Under the pieces are notes generated by a model that was not told the origin of the DNA, made no database searches, and worked only from the letters and a program-made list of their open reading frames with translations. Of a stretch of DNA of 64,000 nucleotides, positions 2,759-61,319 are shown piece after piece. Each line of letters starts with the position of its first letter. Position 1 is the first letter of the stretch. A program made the position numbers and the translations under genes. This DNA is from Macrostomum lignano (taxonomy: Eukaryota), in contig NIVC01000080.1 of the NCBI GenBank assembly GCA_002269645.1, positions 124,001 to 188,000 on the forward strand. The letters are read 5' to 3'.

Positions 2759-18355
<15,597 letters not shown>

Positions 18356-29477: not shown

Positions 29478-41969
<12,492 letters not shown>

Positions 41970-43795: not shown

Positions 43796-44060
43796 TACTC
43801 AACATCGAAATGTCGCCATCACAGAAGATTCCGTCTTTAGTCGCCACTTTTAAGGGTGCAAGTAGTTTCAATCTTTGCGAGTGACGCAACTTAGCTACGC
43901 CGCGGCAGAGTTCAGGAATGAAGTGGGGGAGCGGTGTGCGAGGGTTGGATGGATTAAAGCTACCCCGATCAGTTTTCTCGTATCTTGTATTTGATAATAA
44001 TAGTCCAAGAGAAATTGATCACTGGCGCATAGAGTGGCGACTTTTCAATGTTGCTGAGTA
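43796..44060 (-). mobile_element. About 270-bp TIR MITE, copy 1 (copy 2 at 53257-53529 in the opposite orientation)
   Basis: Ends TACTC(AGC)AACATCGAAA / ACTTTTCAATGTTGCTGAGTA. The body is the reverse complement of 53257-53529. Confidence 0.8.
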
Positions 44061-45484: not shown

Positions 45485-48400
45485 CTAGCAGTTCTCACGC
45501 ACAATGTACCAATCAACAGAGCGCTGCCAATCGTGAAGGTCAACACCAGCAACAGGGAACAGCTGGTCAATAGCAAGGCGAGCCTCCGCCACTGTGGCTG
45601 GGCAAAACATAGGCGAAGCTGTTGAATTGCTGTTGAAAAGGTTGGTGTGGTTTGATAATTGGTAGATTTTGTGAATTTGAACTCAGCAATTTTTGCAAGT
45701 TCATGTGAAAAATCATGCTATAGGAACCTGCAACATCTAATGTCAATAGGATTCTTGGGATTAAACTAGCACTCTTGCTTTATCAGTTTATGAATAAAGG
45801 AAAGGTGCAATAAATTAAATGAAATCTTGCAATGAATAGAATACCTTACCCAATATTTAAACTGGTGCACAAATATCCAGAATGCTTTACATAGTTGTAT
45901 AGCATAGCAATAGAACCCTTGCCCTGAATGGCAACAACTGCCATAGGCACTTGAAACTTTGGTAGGCTACTCTAAAATAGTGCATTAAACAGTCCATTGA
46001 GCTTCATGAACTTAACAAGAATAATCTTTAAGTATATTAATTAATATGCAATATTATAAATTACATAAAAATATATGCATCATTAAATAAGTTCTATATA
46101 TTGAATTTAAAAAATGTTTCGAATTTTATAATACTATAGAATCTAGAATAGGCCTACAAACCCTTAATCTAAAGATAAGAGCTACATAGAAAAACCTTGT
46201 TAGCCCTTTAAGCCTTAGGCCTATTAATGAGATAAGATAAGTGCATTCTGATATGCCAATGGCCCAAGCTTAACTCCAAGTATAATCCTATTAATCTAGA
46301 CCAAAATCCTATTAATTTGGGTCTAAATTGAAATATTGCTTATAATGTATCTATCTACTCATGTAATTAGCTTGACCTAAATATAGTGAAATAGTACATG
46401 TCTAATGGTATATAATGTTACTAAATGATATAAAATAAAGCTATTATTTGGATTTATACCAGAGTAAATATAGTTTCTTATCTCTACTAAAAAGGTCTAT
46501 TAATATATACAAGCTTGGGTGCAACCTAGGGATTTACCCGGCCATTTCTATTGGCAACACACACATGTAAGTCACCATTAGGCAGAATAATAGTCAGTGA
46601 CTACTCTCAGCCAATAGCGACTTATGTGTGTGTTGCCAATAGAAATGGCCAAGTAATTCCCAAGGTTATGTATGTATAAATATATAAGCCCAACTATATT
46701 AAAGAAAAGTTCCATTATTATTGGAATAATGACCAACTAATAATAATAATCAACTATTAAGAATAGAAAACAAACTATCAACATTTGTAAGTTGACACAC
46801 TTTGCACTCCGTGGTGCATCTTCAGGTTTATTTTAATAGAATGAACAAAAAGCCAAGGCTGACGAAAATAAATTTTTGTGTGAGGCAAAAGAAGTTTTTT
46901 GATGAGTAATAAATTATTCTATACAGTAAATTTGTCCAAAGATCAATAGGTAGGTTGGGGATGGAAATTTTGGCAGAGCAGTGCAAGTCTATAGTTGGTG
47001 TACTCTCTCAAAACTTAAAAAAACATGGAGAACATGGTCTGCGCCACTATGTTGGAGTTGAGTGTTGAGGTTGGGGGACAAAGATTTTATGTGCATGGCC
47101 TCAAGAATCTTAAGTTTATAGTCAGATGTACATTAGTTGATAATAATAAAGCGTTCATTAAGAATGCTGTTGGAGCAGCTATTACATTCTAAGAGGTGGG
47201 TTTGAATGGCCAATGGTTTGAGCCAGTGCTCTCTGGTTCTGGTGTGTAAGTGCCTTTTTGTTTTCCCCATGTAGGAGATGCTCTGGTCACCAGAGCAGTT
47301 GAAACAGTAGACAACACCTGCACACAGAGCACATGGCACCTGTGACTTAAACCAGCCAACAAAATCACCAACTTTGGATGACCAAAAGCCAATATGGATT
47401 TTTCTGTTGAGTATATTGTTGAAAAATTTGCTGATTTTGCTTTTAAAGATAAGAGACAGATAACCAAAAAAAGGAAGAATGATGATTGGTTCACTGGGGT
47501 TGATGTTTTCAGCTTTAGTGGTTTGTTGTGGGTTGATTTTTTCAGTAATGAATTTATTTTAAAACTTGTACATTAATATACAATATTTACTCTTAAGTTT
47601 GCTAATACTTGTTTTAGTGAAATATAACCATTAAGCATAGTTTATACTCTGCTATATGTTCAGTTGTTTTAAAATTTATATTATAAGTAGCTATATGAAA
47701 AATATAGAATTAGAAGTTTGATACTGATTGTTTTTTGTAGCTTTGTAGACTAGAACATAATAGGCTATCATAACTGTACTAGTGCTATGCCTTTATCATA
47801 GTATACTCGAATGTTCTTTCAATGTAATAACTGTATATTCGAATCTTTCTTAGAAACTGAATCTACGCGAACGCCAAATAATAGTTTGTTTTAATGCGCG
47901 AAATAAATTGGAGAATTATTTTTTTGTTTTAATCGTATGTGGGGAAAATCACTATATATAGGAGCGGTTTCGCGACAAATATACTCTAACTGTCTTTTAC
48001 TCGTGAGCAAATAATTGCGAACAGAATAAGCAGTTCAATCTAAACCATTTCAAAGTCTATGAGCTAAATAGCGACTTATTCATTTGCAAAACCTGTGAAA
48101 CGATTCTAAGAAATTTGCTAAGAGAAGGGAATTGGGACTAATTCTTGGAGATATACTAAGAGAGGCGCCGTGACCCTCTAGTCTCGGTGAACGCCCGATT
48201 AGGACTATACACTAATACATATACCAGTACTAGACCGCTCAGGCCATAAGCTACTAGAACGCTACCAGAAAGCAAGCCATAAGCTACCAGAAACGCTACT
48301 AAGAACGCTACCAGAAACGCTACTAAGAACGCTACCCAGAAATATTTAAATGAAATTCTAAGAAATAGTTAGGGAGTAAAAGCAAGTATAATCAGGATAA

Positions 48401-50987: not shown

Positions 50988-52294
50988 AACTGACTGCATC
51001 TGAATTCTGAATATGATTAAAATACTGCGCGGCGTCAAATTCTGCAATCCTGGAAAGTTTTAAACCCATGGCCGTTCTTTTTTGAAGAATTTTGCTAGAA
51101 TAACTTCATCTACTTAAATCGCAACATGCGATGCAGTTAGCATTAGAATTACAGATTACAGAATTCTCTGTGATTACGATCTGAGTAGTCAGCACGAAGA
51201 ATTACTCAACTTTACCAGCAAAATGTTCGTGGAATTGAATAGTATATGTAGTACTAATATAGAAGCGCCAAAATTGTTGATGGGTCATAAATTTGCTTCC
51301 TAGAGTACTAGTAAAAGAGAGAGTTGTTGACACTAAGGCCAGGGGCGCGTTTTCATGGATTTTATGGGGGGACAAAGCCAAGAATTCTGTATGTACATGT
51401 ACATGAATAAATTTCTACATGTACACTATTTTCAGAATCGGGGTTGTCAGCGATCATTTTAGCGCCGCAGGCACCATTTAAGCGCCGCAGGCACCATTTT
51501 ACTGCCGCAGGCACAATTTTAGGACCGCAGGCACTATTTTTGTTGCCCGGAAACAAACTTATTGATTTCCATAACAGATCAACAAAGGTGGGTGGGGGAA
51601 AAAGCATTGGCATATCCCCCCGGTGGCGACGCAACTGAACGAATACAGTAAATAAAGTAAAATCACAAAAAATAAACACAATAAATCAGTAATCTACACA
51701 GGGCAAACCTTAATAGAGGACTAGAGGTGTCACGCTCATATCAAAGAATTTGTAAAAGTTTACAAAGTAATTTATATTTCTTAATACAAACTGAAAACCT
51801 GCGGTAAATTTCAGTACTTTCAGCGAATAAAATATTAAACTTGTAGAATTAGAGAAACCGTTACTATAATTACGTACGAGTAAATTCCGTTACAAAGCAT
51901 GGATCTACAACACGAAAATGCAAATGCAAATAAGATTTGCTAATTTCAATTCGAAAGAAATTGGAAATGTGATTTTTTTATATACAGATTTCATATAGCT
52001 GTATAGCCACTAAAGAAGGTAGCCATAAATACTCAATATTTATAAAGCACGAAAATTGGGCATTATGACAATTATGAAACATCCCTTTCTTACTTTTACA
52101 TAAGCTGTAAGATTTAAGTATACGGTGTGATAAAACAAAGGAAAGTACAGAGTAACGTACAGTATAAAAAGCAGAGAAAAAGATTCAGCATTTCAAGGCT
52201 ATCCGATAGTTGCCCAATATTAATGAGACACCATAATATTTTTTACTCAATGCAGGCTCACTCGATTTTATCAACCAGCTGCTACACTCACTGG

Positions 52295-54093
52295 TCAGTG
52301 GTCATTGCTGCTATGCTCAGCGCTATTGCCAGTACCAGTCGTAGGCGGCGGCGACTCGCCGCAGCCGTCTGTTGGTCGGCGAAGACCGCCAACGCCACGC
52401 TGCTGCCATAAGTGACTGCCGCTGCCCGGGCCGCCATTGGCAGCAGCGGTGAAGTCCAGAGCGGAATAAAACACGGGCGACATGAGCGTCACATCGGATG
52501 ATCCGTTTGCGCCGCCAGCTCCAAAGTCGTCGAATGCGCCATCGAAGCCGTCGTTAAGTTCGTCTTCGAGTTCTTCGTCGTCATCATCATCTTCATCAAT
52601 GAGAGTCGCATCAGGATGCTGCTGCTGCCTACAGTGCATTCGTTGCAATCGAGACGAGGACTGCGCAGCGGCCGGATTCTGCAGCAGGTGGCGCGACAAT
52701 TGCGCAACGGAAGCGAATGCGGCGCCGAGATTCTGCTCAGCCCAGAGTAGAACTAAGGCTCTAGCGTCGGAGTCGGCCGCTGAATCTGAGTCGCGTTTCT
52801 GAATGAGCAGCACAATGGATTTTTATAGAATGGACCGGACTTAGTGTTGCACTAATAAGTGCTGATATTTCTTGGATCAAAGCTGAGACATAATGATAAT
52901 CAGCAACTCTAGCATACATGCGCAACCTTGGGAATCACCCGGCCGTTTCTATTGGCAACACATACACTTGTAAGTCGCTATTGGCTAAGAGCAGTCACGT
53001 GACTACTATTCCGTCCAATAGCGACTTACATGTGCGTGTTGCCAATAGAAACGGCCGAGTGAATCCCAAGGTTACGCCCAAGAATGAACTCTAGTAACAA
53101 CTACGAGTAACTCTTGAAGTCCCTTGCCAAGGCAGTGTCCCTTAGCATTGAGATGGAGATTATTGCCAAACTACAGTGGAGTGCTGTCCAGAAGACGCCA
53201 AGGGGCCAGTTTAGAAGACGCCAAACACCCATATTGTAAATGAGGGATCATACTCGTACTCAGCAACATTGAAAAGTCGCCACTCTATGCGCCAGCGAGC
53301 AATTTCTCTTAAACTATTCTGAAACAAAAGATACGAGAAAACTGATCGGGATAGCATTAATCCGTCCAACCCTCGCACACCGCTCCCCCACTTTATTTCT
53401 TAACTCAAGTCTGCGAGTGACGCAACTCGGCTATGCCGCGGCAAAGATTAAGAAACTTAACCTGCACTCTCAAAAGTGGCGACCACAGACGGAATCCTCT
53501 GTGATGTCAACTTTTCGATGTTGCTGAGTGTTTGTTCCTTCAGAACATCTCGCCTGCAGTGCAAAAATATTATAGCCAGAGGGACTCTTGCCTGCCATCC
53601 CCTGGCAAAAAAGTTTTTCCATGGATCTTGATACAAAGTTTATGAAGTTGCTCTATATCTATGCAAATATGCAGCAAGTTTCAAAGCAACAGCATTCAGA
53701 ATATTTAAGATAAAGTACTAAAGCAATAATCTAAGCGACACCAACTGTCAAGAACTTTGTATCTCCGTCAGCATTGACTACAATTGAGGACATTTGGATC
53801 ATCTTTACAGAACGAAAAACCTAGTTGAAAGCGGCATACAGCGATATAACTATTACCTCTACTCGAGAGCGATTCAGCCATTGAAAACCACGCTGACGGG
53901 CCGACAGAGCAACAGTAGGCGGTTCATCTTTTCCAGCTGGTAGCATTGTATAGAGCAGCAAGCGCTCAGCATCTGTTAGCGATTCAATTCGACGCAACAA
54001 AGTCTGAACTTTATTCTGAGAACTTGGACCCAGAGCTGTTTTTAGATCCTCAGCCAGAGACTGGGCCTGGTCTAAATTGTTGCCTTTTACAGA
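52295..54093 (-). CDS. Partial RFX5/RFX7-like gene (N-terminal dimerisation-type motif and post-DBD motif present; DNA-binding core not found)
   Basis: Exon 54093-53857 (phase 0/0) encodes SQNKVQTLLRRIESLTDAERLLLYTMLPAG...RQRGFQWLNRSRVE, like RFX7 [30 protein letters not shown]...AFSWIR. Exon 52798-52295 (phase 0, stop) encodes ARALVLLWAEQNLGAAFASVAQLSRHLLQ, like RFX5 [29 protein letters not shown], followed by an acidic low-complexity tail. The reference motifs are recalled from memory. The start exon was not located. Confidence 0.7.
52926..53071. mobile_element. Palindromic MITE of about 145 bp, copy 2
   Basis: Self-complementary, homologous to 46525-46665, with a central GTCACGTGAC. Confidence 0.85.
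53257..53529 (+). mobile_element. About 270-bp TIR MITE, copy 2
   Basis: Ends TACTCAGCAACATTGAAAAGT / ACTTTTCGATGTTGCTGAGT; homologous to 43796-44060. Confidence 0.8.
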
Positions 54094-54854
54094 CTGAAAA
54101 GTAGTTGTGTTCTGTATTGTAATCTATGCATTTATCAATGGCAAATTACACAAGATTCTATTTTTTCCAATATACTAAAAATGGTCTGTCGGTATGTGTG
54201 TGTGTGTATGTGTGTGTGTGTGATCGATTTTAGCAAAAACGGCTCAACCGATTTTCTTCGAACTTGCACTGTTCGATCAGAAATTTTCCCGTGACAGTAC
54301 ATGCATCGTGGCTAAGAAATTGCTTGATGCTAAAGGGATTAAATATCGAAAAACATGCTTTTTGCAAAGGTCAAGCAGCTCTTTCGACTTGAAATGCATC
54401 GTAAGAATGCTAGCAGAAAAACTGACTGGTTGAATTCTGATTCTGAAATAGATTGCATCACAATACACTTTATTTATCGTCTGTGTACTGGCTGAATTTG
54501 ACACTCAATTGAATTGCGTCACAGCTTTGAGTGTGAAAGCATAGCGCAGTACTGAATTTATATTACGTAACCATATTGTAAACTTTCATAGACACTGGTA
54601 CTGACTTGCCTAAGAAATTGATTATGTCATAACTGCTTCGTGAGACTTTTTACTCTACCTGACTTGGTGTGAGTGTTGAATTATATAAGTGGTACAACAT
54701 CACTGATAACTTCGATGAGAGCTAGCCTAGAGCTGAACAGACCAGACTGCTAATGCAGCGACCTAGGTTCGAATCTAAGTAGTTTAAAAGTAGTAGTGTA
54801 AAATTTTTTATTAAAAGGTTTTATTAAAGGACTAAATAAAAACACTTAGATTAC

Positions 54855-57470
54855 TGCACTCGATAAGCCAAGGATTATTGCTATTAATAAACCAAGGACT
54901 ACTGCACTCGATAAACCAAGGACTATTGCTCTTGGCAAACCAAAGATTACTGCACTTGATTAATCAAGGATTATTGCTATTAATAAACCAAGGATTACGG
55001 CACTTGGAAAACCAAGGATTACTGCACTCGATAAACCAAGGACTATTGCTCTTGGCAAACCAAGGATTACTGCACTCAAGAAGCCAAGAATTATTGCACT
55101 TGGAAAACCAAGGATTAATGCACTCGATAAACCAAGGACTATTGCTCTTGGCAAATCAAGGATTACTGCACTCAAGAAGCCAAGGATTATTGCTATTAAT
55201 AAACCAAGGATTACTGCACTTGGAAAACCAAGGATTACTGCACTCGATAAACCAAGGACTATTGCTCTTGGCAAACCAAGGATTACTGCACTCAAGAAGC
55301 CAAGGATTATTGCACTTGGAAAACCAAGGATTACTGCACTCGATAAACCAAGGACTATTGCACTTGATAGGCCAAAGATTACTGCGCTTGATAAACCAAG
55401 GATTATTGCACTTGATAAACCAAGGATTATTGCACTTGATAAGCCAAGGATTACTGCGCTTGATAAACCAAGGATTATTGCACTTGATAAACAAAGGATT
55501 ATTGCACTTGATAAACAAAGGATTATTGCACTTGATAAACAAAGTATTATTGCATTTGATAAACAAAGGATTATTGCACTTGATAAACAAAGGATTATTG
55601 CACTTGATAAACCAAGGATTATTGCACTTGATAAGCCAAGGATTATTGCACTTGATAAGCCATGGATTATTGCACTTGATAGTAAAGAATGTTGCACTTG
55701 ATAAGCCAAGGATTAATGCACTGGATTATTCAAGGATTATTGATATTAATAAACCAAGGACTACTGCACTTGATAAACAAAGGATTATTGCACTTGATAA
55801 ACAAAGGATTATTGCACTTGATAAACAAAGGATTATTGCACTTGATAAACCAAGGATTATTGCACTTGATAAGCCAAGGATTATTGCACTTGATAAGCCA
55901 TGGATTATTGCACTTGATAGTAAAGAATGTTGCACTTGATAAGCCAAGGATTAATGCACTGGATTATTCAAGGATTATTGATATTAATAAACCAAGGACT
56001 ACTGCACTCGATAAACCAAGGATTATTGCTCTTAATAAACCAAGGATTACTGCACTTGGAAAACTAAGGATTACTGCACTCGATAAACCAAAGACTATTG
56101 CACTTGATAAACCAAGGATTATTGCACTTGATAGGCCAAGGATTACTGCACTTGATAAACCAAGGATTATTGCACTTGATAGGCCAAAGATTACTGCGCT
56201 TGATAAACCAAGGATTATTGCAGTTGATAAGCCAAGGATTATTGCATCTGATAAACCAAAGATTATTGCACTTGATAAACCAAGGATTATTGCACTTGAT
56301 AAACCAAGGATTATTGCACTTGATAGGCCAAAGATTACTGCGCTTGATAAACCAAGGATTATTGCACTTGATAAACCAAGGATTATTGCAGTTGATAAGC
56401 CAAGGATTATTGCATCTGATAAACCAAGGATTATTGCAGTTGATAAGCCAAGGATTATTGCATTTGATAAAACAAGGATTATTGCACTTGATAAACCAAG
56501 GATTATTGCACTTGATAAACCAAGGATTATTGCACTTGATAAACCAAGGATTATTGCTCTTGGCAAACCAAGGATTACTGCACTCGATAAGCCAAGGATT
56601 ATTGCTCTTAATAAACCAAGGATTACTGCACTTGGAAAACTAAGGATTACTGCACTCGATAAACTAAGGATTATTGCTCTTGGCAAACCAAGGATTATTG
56701 CACTTGATAGGCCAAGGATTACTGCACTTGATAAACCAAGGATTATTGCACTTGATAAACCAAGGATTATTGCACTTGATAAGCCAAGGATTATTGAACT
56801 TGATAGGCCAAGGATTACTGCGCTTGATAAACCAAGGACTATTGCACTTGATAAACCAAGGATTATTGCAGTTGATAAGCCAAGGATTATTGCACTTGAT
56901 AAACCAAGGATTATTGCACTTGATAAACCAAGGATTATTGCACTTGATAAACCAAGGATTATTGCACTTGATAGGCCAAGGATTACTGCACTTGATAAAC
57001 CAAGGATTATTGCACTTGATAGGCCAAAGATTACTGCGCTTGATAAACCAAGGATTATTGCAGTTGATAAGCCAAGGATTATTGCACTTGATAAACCAAG
57101 GATTATTTCACTTGATAAACCAAGGATTATTGCACTTGATAAACAAATATTGCACTTGATAAACCAAGGATTATTGCACCTGATAAGCCAAGGATTACTG
57201 CGCTAGATAAACCAAGGATTATTGCATTTGATAAACCAAGGATTATTGCACTTAATAAACCAAGGATTATTGCACTTGATAAACCAAGGATTATTGCACT
57301 TGATAAACAAAGGATTATTGCACTTGATAAACCAAGGATTATTGCACTTGATAAGCCAAAGATTACTGCACTTGATAAACCAAGGATTATTGCACTTGAT
57401 AAACCAAGGATTATTGCACTTGATTAATCAAGGATTATTGCTATTAATAAACCAAGGATTATTGCACTAG
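54855..57470. repeat. 24-bp minisatellite (GATAAACCAAGGATTATTGCACTT)n, about 108 copies, with a 238-bp internal block duplication
   Basis: 24-bp period. The irregular junction GATAGTAAAGAATGTTGCACTT...TTCAAGGATTATTGATATT occurs at both 55678 and 55916. It explains the ORFs at 54878-57470. Confidence 0.98.
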
Positions 57471-57659
57471 CTGAGAAGCTGATTACTGCGCTGTCTAAAA
57501 AAGAGATTATTGCGCTCGCTGAGACGTGGATTGTTGCACAACCTGAGAAAGTGATTATTGCATTAGCGGAAGTAACATTTGCACTAGCTACTTGCTGTCT
57601 CGTGGATGCTTGCTCTCGAGGGGGATACTTGCTATTTGAGAGAGGGGGTACTGGCTACA

Positions 57660-58025
57660 TGCATGGGATTCTTTCTATCCAGGGATGCTTGCTATTCAGG
57701 GATTCTTGCTATCTGCAGGATGCTTGCTATTTAGGGATTCTTGCTATCTGCAGGATGCTTGCTATCTGGGTGGATGCTTCTATAATATCTGGGGGGTGCT
57801 TGCTATCTGCAGGATGCTTCTATAATATCTGGGGGGTGCTTGCTATCTGCAGGATGCTTCTATAATATCTGGGGGTGCTTGATATCTGCAGAATGCTTGC
57901 TATCTGAGTGGATGCTTGCTATCTGGGTGGATGCTTCTATAATATCTGGGGGGTGCTTGCTAATCTGCAGATGCTTGCTATCTGTGGTGATTCTTGCTAT
58001 GAGCATTAGAGGATGCTTGCTATCT
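57660..58025. repeat. Degenerate short-period repeat (GGATGCTTGCTATCTGCA-like)
   Basis: Recurrent TGCTTGCTATCTG core, plus three TGCTTCTATAATATCTGGGGG variants. Confidence 0.85.
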
Positions 58026-58393
58026 GCGATTGTTCACTTTTGGAGGGGGTTGCTTGCTGTCTTGGGAATATTTTCTATTTAGTGAAACGATATTTTGTTG
58101 ACTGTTTGTTAATTTTAGAGAAAAAGTGATTTTTTAATTTTGCAAACATCTTAGTCCGTGACAATTTTACACGAATAAGGTGATTTTTAAAATGTGAAGA
58201 AGGAATTAGTGTTTAAGAAAATGTGTTTTTTTATTGTTTTCCATGAACTATTTTTGCTCCTTTCTTATTGGGCGCCCCGAAGGGGGGCCGCACTAGATTG
58301 CTAGTTCTGAATTGTAATTCTATGCATTGTCAATGGTAAGTTGGTAACTACAAGTAGTTATACAAGTAGTCTAACTAGAGCTGTGGTTTAAAA

Positions 58394-60268: not shown

Positions 60269-61319
60269 ATGGCAGGTGCATATCCATGTGTGGTCTGTCT
60301 GCAGCCAGTTTGCGATGGACAAGAAGCAATTGAGTGTTCTCAATGCTTGAATTGGCAGCACCGTGCATGTGATAGTCGCGTCACAATCGATCAGTATTCT
60401 GCAATGAGAAATGTTGGTGAGTTTTTCTGGCTTTGCAATCAATGCAATAGACGGGCTCCTGCAGGTAACTTAGCAGTGTCTCAAGCTGCAGATGCTGCAG
60501 TGGTACATGTACAAGCCCCGAATTCTGGACCAGGGGCTGTGTCCTCTGCCTGCTGAAAATCCAGAACCAGTGCATTTGATTCCGGCGCAAGCAGAAAATT
60601 TTCTTTACCAGTATCCAGATTTCAATGACCCTGATCCAGCTCTGGAAGAATCCATTCAAATTCCTCCAGCAGAGCTTGCACCGCCCTGCAGCCCACCTCC
60701 CCAGCCCTTTGAGATTCTTACAGGTGCAGGATGCAGTCACGGAAAAGACCTTCTAGTGCAGTATGCCCAACGAGACCTTGGCCATCTGATGAATGAAAAA
60801 ACGTGGCGAAATGGCAACACGTACTATCGCTGCACTAAGCGTTTATCACTGCACTGTCATGGCTCCGCAGTCCGCCGTGCTGATGGAACCATAGAAGCCC
60901 TTGCTCTGCACACATGCGATCCAGTTGATCGGCCAGCTCAGAAGAGAAAGGCAGCAAAGGAGGTAAAGGAGGGAGCAAAGCGCATGTTGTTTACCTCTGC
61001 TAGAATTATCGCGGAGGAGAAGGTAAGAGAATTTTCACCTGAAGTGCAGGAGGTGCTTAGTATTGAGTCATTGAGTCGCAATGCTAATTACAGTCGCAAA
61101 AAAGATTGCCCTATGGAACCTGTTGATGTACATTGTCAAGTTGATCCTAGACATGTACCTGCCCAGTTTCATTTGCAGGATGTGACAGTTCCTGAGACAA
61201 ACGGGCGACACTTCGTCTTCATGACAACAACTCAGCGAGAACTATTATCAACCCAACGAATCTTGAAGTGCGACGGAACTTTTAGCATTGTCAAGGCTAA
61301 TCAGATCATAATAAGTTAA
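60269..61319 (+). mobile_element. Truncated Mutator/MULE (Phantom-like) transposase with an N-terminal PHD finger and FLYWCH-type finger
   Basis: ORF 60269: CVVCLQPVCDGQEAIECSQCLNWQHRACD...WLCNQC (C4HC3 PHD). ORF 60492: TYYRCTKRLSLHCHGSAV...LHTCDP (FLYWCH/WRKY-like), then FVFMTTTQRELL...KCDGTF (first catalytic Asp of MULE DDE), with a stop at 61319. The two ORFs are joined by either an intron (60465-60564) or a frameshift. Confidence 0.8.

Follow-up and report, generated by a model that had tools for sequence, protein, structure and literature searches.

An RFX5/RFX7-like gene without the winged-helix DNA-binding core in the flatworm Macrostomum lignano

The locus and its gene model

Within a 64,000-nucleotide stretch of the Macrostomum lignano genome (the window; positions 124,001 to 188,000 of contig NIVC01000080.1, assembly GCA_002269645.1, Mlig_3_7), we analysed a two-exon gene on the minus strand that resembles the RFX5/RFX7 branch of the RFX transcription factor genes and lacks a DNA-binding domain (DBD) of the winged-helix type. 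An earlier reading of the letters alone (hereafter referred to as the original prediction) had proposed such a gene at positions 52295-54093. The analysis covers this one window and the locus of a second gene copy (L001, on contig NIVC01000434.1). Window positions 42295-63946 are identical to NIVC01000080.1:166295-187946, in reverse orientation. The parts of the gene, in window coordinates, are as follows.

54094..54100, minus strand: acceptor TTTTCAG ahead of exon A, a likely spliced-leader trans-splice site
53857..54093, minus strand: exon A, 79 codons, ending ...RQRGFQWLNRSRVE (also given as ...SARQRGFQWLNRSRVE), phase 0
53929..54057, minus strand: RFX5_N domain, residues 13-55 (Pfam PF18326, E=3.5e-6, 27.1 bits)
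53857..53886, minus strand: FQWLNRSRVE, what is left of the first helix in the RFX winged helix (W-x-x-R-x-x-x-E), with the invariant W72, R75 and E79
52799..53856, minus strand: intron, GT...AG, 1,058 bp, without DBD-coding potential
52295..52798, minus strand: coding part of exon B, 167 codons plus TGA, starting KRDSDSAADSDARALVLLWAEQNLG..., phase 0
52673..52771, minus strand: post-DBD motif SDARALVLLWAEQNLGAAFASVAQLSRHLLQNP, located by hhalign and by tblastn with a full-length RFX7-like protein
52520..52600, minus strand: acidic, aromatic-studded block IDEDDDDDEELEDELNDGFDGAFDDFG, with 16 of 27 residues D or E, no K or R, and 6 hydrophobic or aromatic
52005..52294, minus strand: probable 3′ untranslated region, over which the two gene copies diverge by 3.5%, against 8.2% further 3′; poly(A) site not established

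The donor GTAATA directly follows exon A, and the acceptor CATTCAG precedes exon B. The two exons, which had been described as phase-compatible, are both in phase 0 across the GT-AG intron, and their spliced product comprises 246 residues, not counting a methionine donated by a leader. The junction 53857->52798 is that of the GenBank gene model in both genomic copies, BOX15_Mlig029392g1 in the window and BOX15_Mlig028850g1 in L001. When the spliced 246-residue sequence was used as a query, the sole match among 5.8 billion proteins was PAA83099.1 (‘hypothetical protein BOX15_Mlig028850g1, partial’; 246 residues, 98% identical, same exon structure). The product of the window's own gene, PAA91695.1 (BOX15_Mlig029392g1; 197 residues, annotated from Met50), shares the 90% cluster of that protein. 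Both copies are named only ‘hypothetical protein’ in GenBank and carry no domain assignment. The Mlig_3_7 GenBank annotation has no other source than transcript assemblies, both genome-guided and de novo, which were split at mapped trans-splice and poly(A) sites before TransDecoder was applied (PMC5730564). Through this annotation, the junction anticipated by the original prediction is therefore transcript-supported at two loci.

An older model of the L001-type copy, UniRef100_A0A1I8J5R5 (251 residues), bears the name ‘Rav1p_C domain-containing protein n=2’. The older ML2 annotation probably had a longer or fused gene model that gave rise to this name; neither copy has a Rav1p_C-type gene annotated within 10 kb.

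Retained and missing parts of the RFX5/RFX7 architecture

The RFX5_N match of exon A lies above the Pfam cut-off of 25 bits, and the best sequence match in the PDB was the N-terminal domain of RFX5 (2KW3, E=0.005). To the same effect, hhalign against a profile built from 13 RFX5/7 N-terminal regions placed exon A on columns 30-107, which span RFX5_N, the linker and W-I-R-x-x-L-E-E (E=9e-7). In an alignment of 22 sequences, exon A retains the invariant columns L45, L47, Y48, L51, P52, G54, W72, R75 and E79. Residues 10-42 of exon B were placed on profile columns 209-241, which hold the LVCEWAQKVL..F..V..LARFLV motif (E=2.5e-4, 43% probability); this match is weaker than that of RFX5_N, yet it stands in the expected order. 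The conserved post-DBD pattern, A-A-C-x-L-V-C-E-W-A-x-K-x-L...F...A-R-F-L-V, is thus found colinear with RFX5_N. An exhaustive phmmer search of 1.8 billion representative sequences added only two further proteins, a fish RFX7-like protein and an 837-residue RFX7-like protein from metatranscriptome contigs. Judged by this sequence homology, the gene is a descendant of an RFX5/RFX7-type transcription factor gene. Pfam and hhalign agree here with the original prediction, which had described an RFX5/7-derived gene that keeps the N-terminal domain and the post-DBD motif in their original order and lacks the core between them.

A global MAFFT alignment with homologues pushed exon B onto DBD columns and was replaced by the local profile comparison. 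A structure model of exon A made with the 22 sequences has a pLDDT of 71, with helices at 5-20, 23-37, 41-50 and 63-78, and a single-sequence AlphaFold model of the whole protein (pLDDT 41) was unusable. The RFX7-like isoform X2 of Trichomycterus rosablanca contains two tandem RFX5_N-DBD-post-DBD units, which may have arisen by duplication inside the gene or by fusion of gene models.

Between the two matched segments, about 100 profile columns (108-208) are skipped, corresponding to the remainder of the winged helix plus the PxLPx[I/L] linker. RFX proteins are defined by their winged-helix domain. The Pfam model of this domain of about 75 residues, RFX_DNA_binding (PF02257), had no match in the flatworm protein, and Pfam gave no DBD match in the three minus-strand frames of 52700-53960 either. 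Searches by tblastn with RFX7-like queries at E<=50 recovered exon A and exon B only, with no credible DBD. A hidden Markov model (HMM) of the DBD built from 20 homologues was then run with --max on the six frames of the 64-kb window and of the 21.6-kb L001 locus; no score exceeded 1.1 bits, whereas the positive controls, the Ptychodera and Priapulus loci, scored 1e-28 to 1e-10. There are no runs of N at either locus. The winged-helix core is absent from the gene locus itself, in two copies, as had been expected from the intron. The one hint of a residual domain in the original prediction, VFRSVK...GDTKFLTVGV at 53820-53737, found no support, as no DBD was matched there by Pfam, tblastn or the HMM. 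A faint tblastn match at 53555-53514 (RRDVLKEQTLSNIE against KREVNKSPTLPNIK, E=39) lies inside the terminal repeat of a miniature inverted-repeat transposable element (MITE) and was dismissed as chance.

The linker is missing along with the core. P168, L170 and P171, which are nearly invariant in the homologues, lie in the skipped stretch, and no PxLPx[I/L] motif was found anywhere in the flatworm protein. In the literature, this post-DBD motif is said to be the site of ANKRA2/RFXANK binding. The original prediction had assigned dimerisation and assembly with RFXAP and RFXANK to the N-terminal region together; of this, dimerisation and the RFXAP-type interface can stay with that region, but the PxLPx[I/L] motif for RFXANK/ANKRA2 belongs downstream of the DBD and is the part missing here.

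Overall, the gene has lost all that lay between the first winged-helix helix and the post-DBD motif, plus the long C-terminal part. In Ptychodera and Priapulus the exon containing W-I-R-x-H-L-E-E runs uninterrupted to ...EVY-x-x-Y-[KR]. This continuity rules out an ancestral intron at the flatworm donor, and the donor after R-V-E is therefore new: it is either a cryptic site recruited after deletion of the DBD exons or the deletion breakpoint. In Ptychodera, Priapulus and Nematostella, 6-25 residues separate the start of the last coding exon from the post-DBD motif, and the acceptor of exon B thus lies roughly at the old intron site. The usual intron in the region from RFX5_N to the linker is also gone from the flatworm gene. 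Among the compared genes, an intron after the LP-x-G end of RFX5_N and another after EVY-x-x-Y-[KR] are common to Ptychodera and Priapulus, and one shortly before the post-DBD motif occurs in Ptychodera, Nematostella and Priapulus. The intron positions of RFX5/7-type genes look conserved across phyla.

Gene copies, translation start and surrounding repeats

L001 is a paralogous block, as is expected in the partly duplicated genome of the DV1 line (PMC5730564). We compared the window with it, region by region.

Coding sequence: 10 of 741 nt differ (5 synonymous, 5 non-synonymous), 1.3%
Whole intron: 54 of 870 aligned nt differ, plus 9 indel events, 6.2%
Non-MITE intron: 26 of 599 nt differ, 4.3%
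Near 3′ flank: 10 of 288 nt differ, 3.5%
Far 3′ flank: 45 of 551 nt differ, 8.2%

Exon A differs at 4 of 237 nt, and exon B has 5 mismatches in 497 aligned nt. The coding sequence is less diverged than the intron (10/741 versus 54/870 nt, p=3e-7). Non-synonymous sites (5/558, 0.9%) are about 5-fold less diverged than the non-MITE intron (p=2e-4), whereas synonymous sites do not differ significantly from it (p=0.5). Frame-breaking indels are missing from the coding sequence, although about 8.9 would be expected in 741 nt at the non-coding rate (P=1.4e-4). The sole coding indel, of 7 nt, falls over the stop codon and leaves the length of the protein unaffected. The acidic C-terminal half is as conserved between the copies as the N-terminal half. 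The dN/dS ratio, which the original prediction had named as an indicator, was 0.32 in this one within-species comparison; it falls below 1, though with p=0.07 when taken alone. Intact frames, a non-neutral substitution pattern and a transcript-derived annotation, all present in both copies, set the gene apart from a pseudogene. Because non-synonymous sites are conserved and frame-breaking indels are missing, simple decay is unlikely, and the substitution pattern suggests a protein-coding gene that has been constrained since the copies separated. The ‘decaying duplicate’ offered by the original prediction is disfavoured on the same grounds, given two intact frames.

We then considered where translation begins. 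An in-frame stop codon lies 10 codons upstream of the exon-A acceptor with no ATG between, and the first genomic ATG in frame is codon 50 (Met50). The M. lignano spliced leader, CGGTCTCTTACTGCGAAGACTCAATTTATTGCATG, has ATG at its 3′ end, and the motif [T/C]TNCAG is enriched at the trans-splice acceptors of this species (PMC8629364). The TTTTCAG acceptor of exon A matches this motif. Trans-splicing of the leader at 54093, onto TTTTCAG/TCT, would create ATG TCT GTA..., in frame with the rest of the gene (M-SVKGNN...). In the second copy, the base directly after the acceptor AG is where the TransDecoder coding sequence starts, as the pipeline would yield for a transcript cut at a trans-splice site. 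The AUGs of flatworm leaders have reportedly been documented as initiators, in work attributed to Cheng et al. (2006, J Biol Chem 281:733). We infer that the start codon is probably donated, in frame, by the terminal ATG of the spliced leader. RFX5_N would be translated only with such a start, as a start at Met50 loses it. Given the leader-donated start, the predicted product has 247 residues, a mass of 26.5 kDa and an isoelectric point of 4.6. In it, RFX5_N is followed by the helical post-DBD motif and then by a tail of strongly acidic character; Phe and Leu are interspersed in the acidic block, and a basic cluster is absent.

Upstream of the gene, window positions 54167-58301 form an insertion of about 4.1 kb relative to the second copy, 74 bp upstream of the exon-A acceptor. 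Inside it lie a (CA)n run, about 109 units of a 24-bp satellite (54849-57468) and, at 57740-58037, repeats of 40/78 bp. This insertion may explain why the coding sequence of the window copy was annotated from Met50 instead of from the acceptor. The intron holds two further elements.

53258..53529, unstranded: MITE-like element with 25-nt terminal inverted repeats, common to both gene copies; its terminal repeat recurs at 44040
52913..53094, unstranded: palindromic MITE-like element of 182 bp, in the window copy only, opposite a 182-bp gap in L001

A second copy of the palindromic family lies at about 46539-46651, and the family accounts for an insertion polymorphism between the two gene copies. 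Both intron elements have the features of MITEs, being short and non-coding, with inverted ends or a palindrome and multiple copies, and the palindromic one differs in presence between the loci. The two MITEs that had been noticed in the 1.06-kb gap between the exons are thus confirmed by their inverted ends or palindrome and by the further copies in the window.

Tandem arrays, their periods ranging from 4 to 49 bp, are packed very densely throughout the window (for instance 519-1303, 3481-4725, 11284-12927, 16996-18107, 29797-30817, 34655-35886, 37949-39088 and 41158-41813), and most of its long open reading frames (ORFs) are artefacts of these repeats. On the plus strand, 60269-61319 carries two overlapping ORFs, the first with a sub-threshold PHD-finger match (22.9 bits, cut-off 24) and the second, of 275 residues, with no Pfam match; they may be a transposon remnant.

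Proposed role, alternatives and significance

From the observed gene structure, the retained homology, a locus devoid of the DBD and the constraint on the reading frame, we arrive at an explanation to which we give a probability of roughly 0.55: a transcribed, RFX5/7-derived gene without a DBD, started by the spliced leader, whose product would join RFX-type complexes without binding DNA. RFX5 is said to dimerise and to hold RFXAP through RFX5_N (the 2KW3 structure, attributed to Laird et al. 2010). If the flatworm domain keeps this dimerisation/RFXAP-type interface, the protein could enter RFX-type complexes as a non-DNA-binding subunit. Devoid of the DBD and the ankyrin-partner motif, it would bind neither X-box DNA nor ANKRA2/RFXANK. 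Complexes containing it could have fewer DNA-binding subunits, which would make for dominant-negative behaviour. Alternatively, the acidic tail might contribute an activation-domain-like surface to the complex. Since the interface appears to be kept while the DBD and the ankyrin motif are lost, a non-DNA-binding subunit of RFX-type complexes would be the most likely role; we infer this partner binding from the domains.

Several points weigh against this explanation. Neither the search of 5.8 billion proteins nor phmmer on the 1.8 billion representatives found an orthologue in another species. The flatworm protein has Thr in place of one invariant Leu in the LYLxLP core, and Foldseek with the exon-A model found no significant match in the PDB and did not retrieve 2KW3, a monomer model of an obligate oligomer being a poor probe. 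The transcript support is second-hand, coming through the annotation rather than from inspected reads, and the dN/dS ratio is drawn from only 5 non-synonymous and 5 synonymous differences. Finally, GenBank has the coding sequence of the window copy begin at Met50, which cuts RFX5_N, and the satellite-rich insertion sits close upstream of the acceptor.

The gene could also be a transcribed but functionless relic, an RFX5/7 duplicate with a deleted DBD that is decaying and whose copies are alike through recent separation. The missing DBD-less homologue outside M. lignano, the invasion of the intron and the near-upstream region by MITEs and the satellite array, and a dN/dS not significantly below 1 by itself (p=0.07) fit such a relic. 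We nevertheless consider it unlikely: the full reading frame is kept in both copies, conservation relative to the non-MITE intron is about 5-fold higher at non-synonymous sites (p=2e-4) but not at synonymous ones (p=0.5), coding indels number 0 where about 9 would be expected, and both copies passed a transcript-only annotation pipeline. Translation from Met50 would turn RFX5_N into untranslated 5′ sequence and leave a 197-residue acidic protein with the post-DBD motif only. PAA91695.1 is annotated in this way, and there is no upstream genomic ATG in frame. This start is nonetheless improbable, as the 49 codons before Met50 are open in the same frame, contain the significant RFX5_N match and show just 2 differences in 147 nt when the copies are compared; in the other copy the annotated coding sequence opens with the base directly behind the acceptor, and the leader ATG is in frame and of a kind reported to initiate in flatworms (Cheng et al. 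2006).

To call the gene a ‘paralogue’ presupposes an intact RFX5/7 gene alongside it in M. lignano. Searches for one, with a single sequence (21 matches) and with a profile (best 120 of 620 matches), showed no flatworm entry and were uninformative: the best 120 of the 620 are nearly all vertebrate RFX5/RFX7 proteins, and all of them pair RFX5_N with a DBD, which the search profile itself contained. Alternatively, M. lignano may have no RFX5/7-type gene besides this one, which would then be an orthologue deprived of its DBD, its retained module acting without a DNA-binding RFX5/7 partner. No second similar M. lignano protein was found, and whole RFX groups have been lost elsewhere, for example in nematodes (PMC2873420). 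The searches, however, are blind to a divergent full-length gene, most RFX7 proteins falling below threshold against the query. In M. lignano papers and their supplements, Mlig028850, Mlig029392 and RFX returned an ANKRA2 entry only; this concerns Mlig030174.g2 and Mlig017032.g3, trans-spliced ANKRA2 (RFXANK-like) homologues in a table with neoblast and irradiation labels (PMC5816591). The usual ankyrin partner of RFX7 thus exists in M. lignano, even though the flatworm protein has no docking motif for it, and its presence suggests an RFX7-type axis. Retention of the ANKRA2 homologue speaks against a sole orthologue, although ANKRA2 has other clients, and we regard that alternative as distinctly improbable. 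Least credible of all is that the missing DBD is an artefact of assembly or annotation, or that its exons lie elsewhere. The genome is repeat-rich and hard to assemble (PMC5730564), but the same structure occurs on two independent scaffolds free of N runs, the junction is canonical and in phase, and neither the 64-kb window nor the 21.6-kb second locus gives any DBD signal.

Our explanation, a DBD-less RFX5/7-derived subunit, can be set beside known systems. The flatworm protein shares with RFX7/RFX5 (group 3) the RFX5_N domain, a W-I-R-x-x-L-E-E start and the LVCEWAQKVL...LARFLV motif, in the same order. It differs from them in having no DBD beyond the first helix and no PxLPx[I/L], in its length (about 247 residues against 600-1,400), in an acidic tail without detectable homologue, and in a donor site that falls inside an exon continuous in Ptychodera and Priapulus. 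RFXAP is a non-DNA-binding subunit of RFX complexes that docks on RFX5_N (2KW3); the two have no sequence relationship, and the flatworm protein represents the RFX5 side of the interface. DBD-less isoforms of human RFX4 and RFX8 (‘group 4’) have been proposed to add combinatorial regulation; they arise by alternative starts or splicing from DBD-encoding genes and keep the C-terminal DIM/B/C domains (PMC5838959). They resemble the flatworm product as RFX-family products without a DBD that keep a protein-interaction region. In the flatworm gene, by contrast, the DBD is gone from the locus itself, the branch is RFX5/7 and the interface is RFX5_N. To our knowledge, DBD-less RFX products have so far been described only as these RFX4 and RFX8 alternative isoforms. 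Id proteins and microProteins are dimerisation-only regulators, which have the interaction domain without the DNA-binding part. The flatworm protein may follow the same logic in an unrelated family, by analogy as far as partner binding is concerned; unlike Id-type regulators, it could through its acidic tail equally make an activating subunit.

What is new is a separate gene of the RFX5/7 branch that lacks both the DBD and the ankyrin-partner motif and in which RFX5_N and the little-studied post-DBD motif are constrained. It is without the domain that defines an RFX transcription factor and bears both segments that mark RFX5/7 descent. Assigning these domains improves the GenBank annotation of both copies, and the gene offers an example of a coding sequence that would be complete only with a leader-donated AUG. 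More tentatively, it may be a stand-alone, maintained DBD-less RFX5/7 derivative with a leader start and a dedicated role as a non-DNA-binding subunit or antagonist, or, in a stronger version, the only RFX5/7-type gene left. Were the stronger version true, RFX5_N and the post-DBD motif would form a module with a function of its own. The gene flags these two segments as a possible self-sufficient functional module and, with RNA interference and transgenesis feasible in M. lignano, may serve as a natural separation-of-function allele for probing both.

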